From positions 1-64,000 of IMG/VR virus record IMGVR_UViG_3300043446_004437: DNA of 64,000 nt; one strand, 5' to 3'. Below are positions 58,074-61,707 of this stretch, in pieces. Position 1 is the first letter of the stretch. Each line of letters starts with the position of its first letter. Position numbers and translations under genes: made by a program. A model generated the notes under the pieces. It ran no database searches. It was not told the DNA's origin and was given only the letters and a program-made list of their open reading frames with translations.

Positions 58074-58351
58074 GAACATCACCAAGATGCGTTGGCACAA
58101 CACGTGCTGGCAAACAGTGTTTGAGGAGTGAAAACTGCCCCAAGCACAAAGAAGCCAATGCAAAAGCAAAGGCAAAATGGAATGCCATAGAGTCAAACAA
58201 GACCTTAAAGCATTTCATGCGCACAAACGGTGGGGCAGAGCTTCCATTGGAATACATACCCTTAACAAAGGCGCAAATCAGAAACCTGGTGAACCAGGGG
58301 CACATTGAGGCCTGTGGTCGCCCATACTTTACCGAGGAGGTAACGCAATGA
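58070..58351 (+). CDS. Small Zn-finger protein
   Basis: C..TT..G..C.....CPKH; AGGAGG SD. Confidence 0.65.
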   Translation: MRTSPRCVGTTRAGKQCLRSENCPKHKEANAKAKAKWNAIESNKTLKHFMRTNGGAELPLEYIPLTKAQIRNLVNQGHIEACGRPYFTEEVTQ

Positions 58352-61300
58352 CAACACCACCAAACGTAGGCAGAGCCCCGGATTCAATCCGGAAGCATGT
58401 CGTACTGAGCCCAGAAGTCCAGAAATGGTTGCGTGATACGCTTGAGCGTGACATTGCTCCAATCCTGGAGACTGATGTCTCTTCGTACGCACGTGGTCGC
58501 CAGAGGATCTGGATGCCATATCAGGCTCCACTTGACACGGCATCAAACATCACTCAGCCATTTGAGCCGAAGTTGATGCATGCGGAACTCTGGCAATGGA
58601 TTGTTAACATTTGCCACCAGTATGGGATGAAGGCACAAACTGCTTTGATCTCAAAGGGTGGGTCAATCAAGCCACACCGTGACACCACGTACGCCGCCGA
58701 ATGGGCCTTTGCGATCAATCTTGGGCAGTGCAAATGGAGCATTGCCTCAGATCGTGAATCCAGCAAACCCGATTACACCATGCTGCTTAAGGGGGGAGAA
58801 GTATTTTCTTTCAACTGCAAACACACGCATAGTGTCAGTGATGTATCGCCAGACCGATGGGCGATCAACGTTTGGGCTATTGCTGAAACAAAGGCTGCAC
58901 GTAACGCAAGGATCCAAGATCGCATTGAAGAGATGCTTGCAAACAACCCAGAATTGGATGAGTTCATCCAACGTCATCAACCAAACATACCACCAAACAC
59001 AGGAGGTAACGCAATGAAACCAAAAACAAATGGGGAGGTAAAACCCATGAAAGAAGAAACACCACAAGAAAAACTCAAGCGTTTGACGCAAGAGTTCCAC
59101 GACAACCAGAAAGGAGCAGAAGTGATTGCATTCATGCATGACTTCTTCCACGTCGTAACCAACGACCCAAGCGACATTGAGAAGCTGGGCTACGACACGT
59201 CACTCAAGACGAACAAGCCATTCAAGATGGGAACCGTAACCCGCGTGGGTCAGAACGGTGAGTACAAGCACAACTTGTGGCTCATGCCCATCAAGAACAG
59301 CCCGACCTGGCAATACGGCTTGTTTGAACACAAGCTCAACAGCCGGGGCAAGAAGTTCAAGCTCAAGATGATCACCATCAGGGAGCTGAAGACGTGGATG
59401 GAAAAGGACAACGGAGACCTGGATGCGCTTATCGCAGAATCCAACTTTGCTTGGGCCAACGCAACCCACGCTTTCTTCTTGAAGATGCGCGACGATAACA
59501 GCTGGTCATTGAGCGAATTGGGTCTCAACGTGCTTGATATGAAGAAGACACCAAAGCGTCTTCAGGAAATCACGCGGTTTACCGAGATCTACCGCTCAAA
59601 GCCAATGAACACGATCAAGCTTGGCGTGTACACCAACAAGTGGTTGCAGGACAATTACATTGGGTATGATCCTTCTGAGGAGGTCATGTTCGATGGTCCT
59701 GCATTCATGCGCAAGTCAAAGTTCATCAAGATGTGCTTTGGCATTGAGGATGAGGAAACCAAGCGTCGTATCATCGGTGGAGTTCACCGCGGCAATCACA
59801 CCTGGCTGTTCCGTATGATCACGCCAAACTTCATGCTGAAGGGCTTGTTGCACATCGTTGAAGATGAAGACATCCAGTCAGACTTGGTGTACCACGAATC
59901 CATGGAAAAGAAGGAGTTGTTCACTACCAATGGCAACTACACTTTTGTTGCATGGGAAATGCCAACCCTGTACGAAGTCTCAGTTGATGATCAATCGATG
60001 ATCAACAACCCGTGGCTGTACACGCCAGAACACATGAAGGCAACATGCAATAATCTGTTGGCTGATTTCAAGGATGAAATTGAGCTTGGACTCATGCCAA
60101 AGTGGATGAAGGTGGATGCCATTGATCAGGAGGAAGGTGGAATCGTCAACGAGAACAACGAACTCCAAGAGTGGCAGGCAAACTACGTCAAGTGGCAGGA
60201 AGCAGGTTTCTCCCTGTACGACAGCTCAAACTTCATCCATCTGGCCTATGGTCAGTTGGCTAACAGGATGGCTGCATCGCTCAAGCGTGGAAACATCTGG
60301 CTGCCCATGCACAACGCATTCATGGCACCGGTGATCACTGACGAAGCATTGGCTGTGCTTGGAGGCCAAAACCTGCCCGAGGAAACCAATAACCTTGTCT
60401 GGTTTGACAAGCGCTTTGGTGCAGTCATCCCTGGGTATCGCTTTGCCGAAACCGCAGAGATGCACGACACCTGGGACCAGGATGGTGACATGGCTCGCTT
60501 CATCCGTATTAAGCTGTGGTGCAGCAACGACATGATGTTGCAGGAAGCAAAGGGTGGATTCATCATCCCTGCTAACCTGGACGTGCCGTCTACGCCAGAG
60601 GAAGCAATCAACATGGTCGTTGTGATCCGTTCACCAAACGGTCCTGGCGGCTATTCGATTGAGCCTTACCACGAGGACTACATGCCGTTCATGCGTGTAA
60701 ACGAAGCAATGGTTCAGGTAATCGACTTGGCTGAAGCTACACCATCAATGAGCTCACTGCTCAGTGGTGTCACGGTTGATGACAAGTTGAACAAGATCAT
60801 TGACAACACTCCGTACTCAAAGCGCACGTTTACTCGTGAAAACGCCACGGACATGATCAAGGCTCAGTGCTTGAACCCTGGGTTTGGCTCGTTTGCCAAC
60901 TTCATGATGGTTTACGCATGCATCTACGGTCCAAGCTACCCAAGCTTCATGCCGGCAACGGGCAATGACATCATCGACGCATCGTCACAGACGGCAAACC
61001 TTGATGCATTTGACTACATCAGGGGCAACGTTGGTGATCTCTGGGACAGCATGGTCAATGACCTTGTGAAGCGGCCATCTGTCAGCATTGACGGGTACAT
61101 TGCCAACAGGATGCCAAAGACCGTGTACGAAAAGCTTTCGCAGTACATGTACGATGGTCCATTGACCGAACTTGTCAAGACCTATGTCCAGGTACTGAAG
61201 AAGGTTCAGGAAGAAAAGCAGAACACGATTTACTTGCGTAACCGTTCTGAGTTGATTCCCAAGCTGCAGGAGTTGATCCCAACACTTTCCACTGATGTTC

Positions 61301-61707
61301 AGGCGGTTCTTGAAGAGTTCAACACCAAGTACATGCGCAAGCTCCGTGCATACGATCAGGCAAAGGCAGAAGCAAAGAGCGAAGAGACACAGTGGTCCAG
61401 CCGTTACTTCAAGGCATGGAACGCTGTCATCGCATCGGACAATCTGTCGGGTATCATCAAGGAAATGGTCGACGAGATCGAACAGGCAAAGTCACCCAGC
61501 AAGATGGCTGTGGCCTTGTATCGTTGGCTCACCGACCCCAAGATGAGCTACGAGAAGGTGTGGCACGAGGGACGTGGTGAGTACGTCAAGGCAAATGCTC
61601 ACCTGCGTTACGGCTTGCTGGATCGCGTAGTGTTCCAGGCCGGTAAGCGTGGACAGAAGTGCATGATGGATCTGCTGATCGAAGGACTCAAGAATCTGGG
61701 TCTTTAG
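58348..61707 (+). CDS. AlkB-like 2OG-Fe(II) domain fused to a putative single-subunit two-barrel RNA polymerase (YonO/RdRP-like)
   Basis: PHRD...HTHSV...RWAINVW in aa 1-200; DG, R...KG and DQDGD motifs downstream. Confidence 0.6.
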   Translation: MTTPPNVGRAPDSIRKHVVLSPEVQKWLRDTLERDIAPILETDVSSYARGRQRIWMPYQAPLDTASNITQPFEPKLMHAELWQWIVNICHQYGMKAQTALISKGGSIKPHRDTTYAAEWAFAINLGQCKWSIASDRESSKPDYTMLLKGGEVFSFNCKHTHSVSDVSPDRWAINVWAIAETKAARNARIQDRIEEMLANNPELDEFIQRHQPNIPPNTGGNAMKPKTNGEVKPMKEETPQEKLKRLTQEFHDNQKGAEVIAFMHDFFHVVTNDPSDIEKLGYDTSLKTNKPFKMGTVTRVGQNGEYKHNLWLMPIKNSPTWQYGLFEHKLNSRGKKFKLKMITIRELKTWMEKDNGDLDALIAESNFAWANATHAFFLKMRDDNSWSLSELGLNVLDMKKTPKRLQEITRFTEIYRSKPMNTIKLGVYTNKWLQDNYIGYDPSEEVMFDGPAFMRKSKFIKMCFGIEDEETKRRIIGGVHRGNHTWLFRMITPNFMLKGLLHIVEDEDIQSDLVYHESMEKKELFTTNGNYTFVAWEMPTLYEVSVDDQSMINNPWLYTPEHMKATCNNLLADFKDEIELGLMPKWMKVDAIDQEEGGIVNENNELQEWQANYVKWQEAGFSLYDSSNFIHLAYGQLANRMAASLKRGNIWLPMHNAFMAPVITDEALAVLGGQNLPEETNNLVWFDKRFGAVIPGYRFAETAEMHDTWDQDGDMARFIRIKLWCSNDMMLQEAKGGFIIPANLDVPSTPEEAINMVVVIRSPNGPGGYSIEPYHEDYMPFMRVNEAMVQVIDLAEATPSMSSLLSGVTVDDKLNKIIDNTPYSKRTFTRENATDMIKAQCLNPGFGSFANFMMVYACIYGPSYPSFMPATGNDIIDASSQTANLDAFDYIRGNVGDLWDSMVNDLVKRPSVSIDGYIANRMPKTVYEKLSQYMYDGPLTELVKTYVQVLKKVQEEKQNTIYLRNRSELIPKLQELIPTLSTDVQAVLEEFNTKYMRKLRAYDQAKAEAKSEETQWSSRYFKAWNAVIASDNLSGIIKEMVDEIEQAKSPSKMAVALYRWLTDPKMSYEKVWHEGRGEYVKANAHLRYGLLDRVVFQAGKRGQKCMMDLLIEGLKNLGL

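Follow-up and report, generated by a model that had tools for sequence, protein, structure and literature searches.

A candidate single-subunit two-barrel RNA polymerase carrying an AlkB-like dioxygenase domain in an uncultured freshwater phage

Can a phage polymerase carry, in the same polypeptide, an enzyme that cleans the nucleic acids it handles? This question is raised by a single open reading frame (ORF) in the first 64 kb of IMG/VR record IMGVR_UViG_3300043446_004437, a 216,024-bp viral contig from an uncultured freshwater phage; this 64,000-nucleotide (nt) stretch is referred to below as the window. The ORF (58348..61707, plus strand) encodes 1119 amino acids (aa) in one frame without internal stop and comprises a dioxygenase domain, a linker and a two-barrel polymerase. 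An earlier note on this DNA had described it as an AlkB-like dioxygenase fused to a putative single-subunit RNA polymerase, and our results support this fusion: both folds were modelled, and the frame was found open across the junction in at least eight lineages of relatives with 53-72% core identity. Our favored answer, which we hold to be reasonably probable, is that the protein is a phage single-subunit two-barrel polymerase of the QDE-1/RDR-like type with an AlkB-like dioxygenase, combining the role of an early DNA-dependent transcriptase with nucleic-acid demodification.

The polymerase core and the dioxygenase domain

The polymerase core (aa 234-1119; 59047..61707, plus strand) was defined from its structural model and the matches of this model. 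A comparison of an AlphaFold model with QDE-1 had been proposed in the earlier note. The model built with 44 relatives was confident over aa 256-1119 (predicted local distance difference test, pLDDT, of ~90), and its best solved matches were plant RDR2, Neurospora QDE-1 and the RNA polymerases (RNAPs) of Thermus phages. The overall fold matches the solved QDE-1/RDR-like two-barrel members across the catalytic region. Among AlphaFold DB clusters, the core matched chiefly eukaryotic RNA-dependent RNA polymerases (RdRPs), and its BFVD matches were uncultured-phage proteins, the P23-45 protein A7XX94 and a phage protein labeled 'RdRP'. A language-model search of the core independently indicated PF05183.

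We aligned the core of 68 diverse homologues sharing 20-38% identity with the window protein. The invariant positions include K400, K403 and R404, which form a basic cluster (59545..59559, plus strand), D449 and G450 (59692..59697, plus strand), K498, D710, D712, D714, R761 and P763. The three aspartates form the putative metal-binding triad D710-Q-D712-G-D714 (60475..60489, plus strand), in which G713 is kept in closer relatives only. The triad is followed by the conserved RxPN motif R761-S-P763-N764 (60628..60639, plus strand) and preceded by the conserved basic residues R489...K498-G499 (59812..59844, plus strand), of which R489 and G499 are nearly invariant and which lie in a beta-rich segment that is a candidate for the second barrel. 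Judging from the alignment and the model rather than from active-site coordinates, the beta-rich segments that hold the invariant K400, K403, R404 and K498 all lie N-terminal to the triad. Single-chain two-barrel enzymes are expected to show this order, with conserved basic residues first and the Asp triad after them (PMC7824862).

The N-terminal domain (aa 1-210; 58348..58977, plus strand) was modeled with high confidence (pLDDT 91.9) as a double-stranded beta-helix of AlkB-like fold, typical of 2-oxoglutarate (2OG)/Fe(II) dioxygenases. Its alignment comprised 64 homologues, mostly free-standing proteins of 160-200 aa. The predicted iron ligands H110 and D112 of the HxD motif H110-R-D112 (58675..58683, plus strand), the predicted third ligand H161 and the putative 2OG-binding R170 (the latter two spanning 58828..58857, plus strand) were invariant across these sequences. 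The domain therefore possesses the beta-helix, the HxD...H triad and the Arg that define the 2OG/Fe(II) superfamily, with which it presented hundreds of structural matches. AlkB-family enzymes made up nearly all of the top 50 Foldseek matches (ALKBH6 at E 6e-7, template-modeling score TM 0.55-0.61) and occupied ranks 1-9 by Z-score, from OsALKBH1 at 15.2 to ALKBH7 at 13.1, with E. coli AlkB at 13.2. A search of viral structure models further revealed matches to the AlkB domains of plant-virus replicases. A likeness to JmjC/FIH topped the list obtained from a poor first model (pLDDT ~45), and AlkB enzymes replaced it after re-modeling with the 64 sequences.

These alignments also bear on the motifs that had been quoted for the protein. 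The HxD...H...R signature assigned to the N-terminal ~200 aa falls entirely within the first 180 residues, DG-x-AFM is present as DGPAFM (residues 449-454), and DQDGD stands exactly at residues 710-714. The spacing given as R-x6-KG was two residues off, the actual arrangement being R489-x8-K498-G499. Because the residues concerned are invariant across diverse homologues of both domains, the quoted motifs are not due to chance.

The sequence of the N-terminal domain points in a somewhat different direction from its fold. Residues 101-176 of the window protein matched the prolyl-4-hydroxylase-like profile PF13640 below threshold, and scores of 15.5-19 bits did not reach the Pfam gathering threshold of 27 bits. 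In AlkB, ABH2/3 and FTO, the distal His is followed by an R-x5-R pair. In the window family, the position at +6 from R170 is occupied by an invariant Trp (W176) instead of the second Arg of this pair. Given the AlkB structural matches, the sequence leaning towards PF13640 and this Trp, we describe the domain as having a predicted AlkB-like fold and as belonging to a sequence family of its own, its substrate being putative.

Searches of known phages yielded little. No match was obtained with megablast against phages and plasmids, no PHROGs family was found for the ORF, the core matched no Pfam profile, and tblastn against phage genomes detected no relatives of the core; its matches were confined to the dioxygenase domain, which Nodularia and Aphanizomenon cyanophages encode in free genes of 190 aa. 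Next to the dioxygenase gene, the Nodularia phage carries a large gene whose product does not belong to the present polymerase family.

The fusion junction and the exchange of modules

The dioxygenase cassette is flanked by two exact copies of a 17-nt direct repeat, 666 nt (222 codons) apart, whereas 0 copies are expected by chance. The first copy (58335..58351, plus strand) contains a ribosome-binding site (RBS) and the ATG of the dioxygenase, whose ORF start overlaps the stop of a small upstream ORF; the second (59001..59017, plus strand) is read in frame and includes M223. It lies within a linker (aa 211-255; 58978..59112, plus strand) that is probably disordered, with a pLDDT below 50 for aa 200-255. 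Shortly downstream, the RBS of the unfused core, GGAGGT, and its ATG (M234, at 59047) are still present (59032..59049, plus strand) and are read as G-E-V-K-P-M in the fusion. This string is kept in fused relatives, and unfused ones begin exactly there. Indeed, relatives L001 and L002 possess a 99%-identical core, lack ~1 kb of the window that contains a small Cys-rich ORF and the dioxygenase, and encode an 886-aa protein starting at the Met equivalent to M234. The core has kept its own RBS and ATG, and it is therefore probable that both the 1119-aa fusion and a free 886-aa core are made. From these sequences, the dioxygenase cassette looks easy to gain or lose.

We then consider how widespread such fusions are. 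A word-indexed search returned 67 close relatives, most of them ~860 aa long and devoid of the N-terminal domain; some are 1109-1133 aa long and carry the dioxygenase, and two present a NADAR domain in its place. An exhaustive search extended the list to 230 clusters (50% identity), each similar to at least a portion of the fusion protein at E values up to 0.001; 116 polymerase cores drawn from them were used to build a tree. The core appears to define a large, unannotated family in jumbo phages from freshwater, whose genomes often encode two or three paralogues. Dioxygenase fusions were found in at least three well-separated clades of the tree, one of them inside a divergent paralogue group, and NADAR fusions at three places. 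Fused and unfused forms alternate even between very close relatives.

Giant proteins that were first caught through their oxygenase domain alone were all found by profile searches to end in the polymerase core. Their architectures include PIF1-oxygenase-core, oxygenase-PIF1-core, PIF1-NADAR-oxygenase-core and DUF4326-SLOG-oxygenase-PIF1-core. Even where two proteins have cores beyond phmmer matching, their dioxygenase domains share 51-62% identity, which indicates that this module is mobile between polymerases. In phages without a fusion, a free dioxygenase gene is often located 0.7-4.5 kb from a paralogous polymerase gene on the same strand. The same domain is elsewhere fused to RNase H and SLOG domains. 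Several independent lines of sequence comparison thus make it well supported that the oxygenase and the polymerase family belong together. Since all fusion partners act on nucleic acids or nucleotides, a nucleic-acid substrate is favored over a protein one. Our literature search found no description of a two-barrel phage polymerase fused to an AlkB-like oxygenase, NADAR, DUF4326, SLOG or PIF1.

No polymerase paralogue was found inside the window. A second paralogue is encoded by the same phage ~10 kb downstream, outside the window (~71,924-74,557 of contig IMGVR_UViG_3300043446_004437; L034 5404-8037). This protein is 877 aa long, shares 22% identity with the window protein over 297 aa and carries the motif H-G-G-H-D-E-D-D. 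Its gene is followed at 1 kb on the 3' side by an SF2 helicase (ResIII/Helicase_C) and further on by a subtilase. Many related phages possess two paralogues and one possesses three. A far more divergent polymerase-like protein of 1470 aa with the motif HGGHDLDD was observed as the third one in this 231-kb relative (L068 5050-9459, contig IMGVR_UViG_3300013121_000027), in addition to the two paralogues present there; it is possibly a virion enzyme and has no homologue in the window.

Promoter-like motifs and the proposed role in transcription

Two classes of short motifs surround the polymerase gene. The class-1 motif, TTATGACTAG, is present in seven exact copies on the plus strand upstream of the gene (within 50506..55736; starts at 50530, 51213, 51517, 51852, 53862, 55365 and 55705), each directly after a GC-rich hairpin and a T-run. 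The class-2 motif, GGAATAAGTCGG, was identified by k-mer counting in three copies, all on the plus strand and downstream: 61827..61838, 120 nt past the polymerase stop codon; 62568..62579, ~20 nt before the start codon of the next gene; and 63874..63885. Distant relatives repeat this layout, with TTATG-NN-TAG variants upstream and AAAATAGGGG, CAAAAGGGG or GGAATAAGTCGG downstream. Relative to the polymerase gene, 15 loci together contain 73 class-1 motifs upstream vs 7 downstream, and 1 class-2 motif upstream vs 63 downstream, with both classes almost entirely on the strand of the gene. Class-2 motifs lie 5-70 nt ahead of RBSs, and a class-2-like motif, GAATAAGACGG, precedes the second polymerase gene. 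The polymerase gene sits at the boundary where one motif class gives way to the other, and distant relatives share this boundary. In T7, phage promoters begin just after gene 1, the polymerase gene. The layout of the window resembles that of T7 in that class-2 motifs start directly 3' of the polymerase gene.

The hairpins themselves are terminator-like. All seven have the form CCCCTGGGGAC-TTCG-GTCCCTGGGGG followed by a T-run, and each is joined to TTATGACTAG and a partial palindrome (ACTAG...CTAGT). This hairpin-TTATGACTAG cassette was also observed in phages whose polymerase is 33-37% identical and is absent from relatives at 54-70%. A palindromic variant, TTATAACTAGTTATAA, is located at 63699-63712 with one mismatch to the class-1 motif on both strands. 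A k-mer search of the minus-strand structural genes, aimed at a third promoter-like motif for late expression, yielded nothing convincing.

Based on this layout, we infer that the polymerase may read the class-2 motifs. The following scheme can be proposed. The polymerase would be expressed early, as the last in a block of short plus-strand genes that each stand behind a terminator and TTATGACTAG cassette. Its product, a DNA-dependent RNA polymerase, would then assume the transcription of the gene block that follows by initiating at the short G-rich motifs beginning just after its own gene, GGAATAAGTCGG in this phage and AAAATAGGGG in distant relatives. Through the class-2-like motif ahead of the second paralogous gene, this could lead to a polymerase cascade. 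The tethered dioxygenase, or NADAR, DUF4326 and SLOG in relatives, would strip alkyl- or ADP-ribosyl-type base adducts at the polymerase, from single-stranded template DNA or from nascent RNA, and PIF1 helicase modules would provide unwinding. Phage transcription may in this way continue despite damage to nucleic acids or modification of them by the host. The swapping of modules in related phages suggests that the polymerase cleans its own template. A further step, possible though doubtful, is that interchangeable modules on a QDE-1-like polymerase, with an AlkB-like oxygenase acting on alkyl adducts, NADAR and DUF4326 on ADP-ribosyl adducts and PIF1 in unwinding, strip host-inflicted base modifications from the single-stranded template within the transcription bubble, a transcription-coupled counter-defence with no described equivalent.

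Several of our results weigh against this scheme, in whole or in part. For the N-terminal domain, prolyl hydroxylases came next after the AlkB enzymes by Z-score (12.1-12.9), behind by a small margin, and sub-threshold matches to PF13640 were obtained for 25 of the 64 family members vs two of the 64 for the AlkB profile PF13532, which had no proper match. It is conceivable that the domain is a protein hydroxylase of the prolyl-hydroxylase (PHD) type with a target such as the host RNAP, a translation factor or the polymerase itself. We consider this unlikely in view of the first nine ranks by Z-score and nearly all of the top 50 Foldseek matches going to AlkB enzymes, of the matching AlkB domains in viral replicases, and of fusion partners (polymerase, PIF1, RNase H, NADAR, SLOG and DUF4326) that all handle nucleic acids or nucleotides. 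A different objection concerns the fusion: relatives with a 99%-identical core manage without the dioxygenase, which is therefore dispensable for core function. A mobile cassette might simply have landed in frame, leaving the free 886-aa core as the working enzyme and the two activities independent of each other. The exact 17-nt repeat with its RBS and ATG on either side of the cassette, the RBS and ATG retained by the core, the absence of the cassette from L001 and L002 and the alternation of fused and unfused forms among very close relatives are all consistent with such an incidental fusion. Its probability is nevertheless rather low, because the junction frame has stayed open in lineages as distant as those cited above, because at least three distant clades present independent fusions with differing linkers and partners, and because a free dioxygenase gene is conserved beside the paralogous polymerase.

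The assignment of the core to transcription has its own difficulties. The PF05183 profile gave no match to the window protein at E values up to 1 or to 44 relatives at up to 0.1, and sequence and profile searches of the PDB returned nothing meaningful for the core. Most of the family carries W-D-x-D-D, whereas the canonical D-x-D-G-D is found in the clade of the window protein. The likeness to YonO and cellular RdRPs that had been noted holds for the latter through the structural matches to RDR2 and QDE-1; it was not recovered for YonO, which obtained an hhalign probability of 0.3% against the 68-sequence core profile in what is a weak test, the template being a single sequence. The two motif classes were defined by k-mer counting in the same 15 loci in which they were then counted, some of them close kin. 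In addition, the exact class-1 motif is missing from the nearest relatives, at 54-70% core identity, and present in farther ones, which indicates that the phylogenies of motif and polymerase are not simply parallel. The reader of the class-1 motif could be a virion enzyme, the host or the present polymerase.

The core could instead be a replication enzyme, a primase or primer-making polymerase acting with PIF1 as a helicase-primase, with repair modules cleaning the replication template. Several giant relatives (P0090, P0159, P0099, P0110, P0125 and P0102) have PIF1 joined directly to the core, a RecA and a PNKP-like phosphatase are encoded in the same early block, and two-barrel enzymes include DNA polymerases such as archaeal PolD (PMC7281927). 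This role appears improbable: all characterized phage members of the clade are transcriptases (PMC10770324), RNA polymerases come nearest among the solved structures, a helicase is absent from most family members, and the two paralogues per genome sit at boundaries of promoter-like motif classes. The top matches to RDR2 and QDE-1 would also suit an RNA-dependent RNA polymerase that copies phage or host RNA, for example into double-stranded or antisense RNA. QDE-1 itself also uses DNA templates, however, and the promoter-like DNA motifs and cascade layout suit transcription. Moreover, the studied phage members of the clade are DNA-dependent (PMC5467207, PMC10770324), and an RNA template is very improbable. 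We thus retain the DNA-dependent transcriptase with a demodifying domain as our preferred interpretation.

Phage single-subunit two-barrel RNAPs and their kinship to eukaryotic RdRPs are established (PMC7281927, PMC7824862, PMC10770324). Within this group, sequence comparisons suggest that the window protein represents a new family or clade, a statement that does not include a comparison with the 23 families aligned in PMC10770324. The eukaryotic RdRPs of RNA interference (QDE-1 and maize RDR2; PF05183) are structural matches, yet they share no detectable sequence similarity with the window protein. Unlike them, the latter is phage-encoded and probably DNA-templated, and variable N-terminal accessory modules replace the eukaryotic head and helical domains. 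The two-barrel RNAPs of Thermus phages P23-45 and P74-26 (non-virion gp64/gp62 and the tape-measure-fused virion gp96) have a smaller aligned core of 300-390 residues and are devoid of dioxygenase, NADAR and PIF1, whereas no tape-measure fusion was seen in the window family. The layout with two paralogues resembles the two-polymerase program of P23-45 (PMC10770324). YonO of SPbeta is of the same general kind, a single-chain two-barrel phage RNAP (PMC5467207), and the window protein appears to fall outside its sequence family. Finally, gp66 of phi14:2, a crAss-like phage, groups with QDE-1 in a clade that unites single-subunit two-barrel enzymes of phages and plasmids (PMC10770324); this protein of ~2,200 aa is packaged in the virion and was not among the top structural matches of the core.

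The replicases of plant viruses (Flexiviridae and Closteroviridae) likewise contain an AlkB-fold oxygenase inside the viral polymerase polypeptide. A role in repairing methylation damage to the viral nucleic acid is generally ascribed to these AlkB domains. They are the nearest precedent in concept, although the plant-virus polymerases are of the palm type and unrelated to two-barrel enzymes, and the window phage has a DNA genome and an oxygenase of a distinct sequence family. The giant relatives also recall polyvalent proteins (PMC5512222) in that they string together nucleic-acid-directed modules (DUF4326, SLOG, dioxygenase, PIF1 and polymerase). Polyvalent proteins are delivered into the host with the DNA; the gene in the window sits among early rather than structural genes. 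That article (Iyer et al. 2017, PMC5512222) does not mention PcfJ, AlkB, NADAR, DUF4326 or 2OG, and RNA polymerase appears in it only as a host target or in references.

The eukaryotic polymerases of RNA interference are believed to derive from phage single-subunit two-barrel RNAPs, of which only a handful have been studied. The present family physically joins such a polymerase to putative base-repair or demodification modules. If this linkage is functional, it would represent, in DNA phages, what the AlkB domains are in plant-virus replicases and would point to host defences that chemically modify phage nucleic acid. For this uncultured phage, the motifs flanking the polymerase gene supply concrete promoter candidates to work with in vitro.

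Genomic surroundings of the polymerase gene

Minus-strand tail-fibre and structural genes reach ~47 kb in the window, and short plus-strand genes occupy it from 47.6 kb on. A PcfJ-like gene of 508 aa (56031..57557, plus strand; Pfam PF14284, E 1.7e-15) is a frequent upstream neighbor of the polymerase gene. It adjoins the polymerase in L001-L007, L010, L013-14, L016, L019-21 and L023, and not in all loci. The PcfJ-like protein could be an accessory factor of the polymerase. A literature search on PcfJ returned nothing on its function and matched only C. elegans pCFJ plasmids.

Between this gene and the polymerase lies a conserved neighbor encoding a CxxC zinc-finger protein of 161 aa (57588..58073, plus strand), whose CxxCxGxG zinc finger resembles the DnaJ central domain or anti-TRAP. 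It is followed by the small basic Cys-rich ORF (58019..58351, plus strand), listed as 110 aa with a likely ATG near 58067. Homologues of both small Cys-rich proteins (57588-58073 and 58019-58351) are encoded by separate early genes in relatives. The plus-strand block further includes a phage RecA (47667-48638, E 2.6e-114) and a PNKP-type HAD phosphatase (52210-52671).

On the minus strand, an ATP-dependent-protease-like protein (phrog_4871) is encoded at 45681-47108. Large tail-fibre-like genes at 13560-22866 contain internal repeats of 136-300 nt with 61-74% identity (families D2, D3, D7 and D11), which suggest duplicated receptor-binding modules. Two adjoining paralogues of ~560-580 aa (8850-12259, phrog_2295) are rich in Gly repeats; their GGN runs lift the local GC content to 55%, and a similar repeat is found in the minus-strand ORF 4476-5615. 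The products of these genes are probably fibre or collagen-like structural proteins. GC content is 29-38% across most of the minus-strand structural block vs 43-51% in the plus-strand early block, and GC skew flips sign near 47-48 kb, where the direction of transcription turns. Finally, WhiB-like genes were observed a few kb 3' of the polymerase gene in relatives L003, L004 and L001, which hints at actinobacterial hosts.

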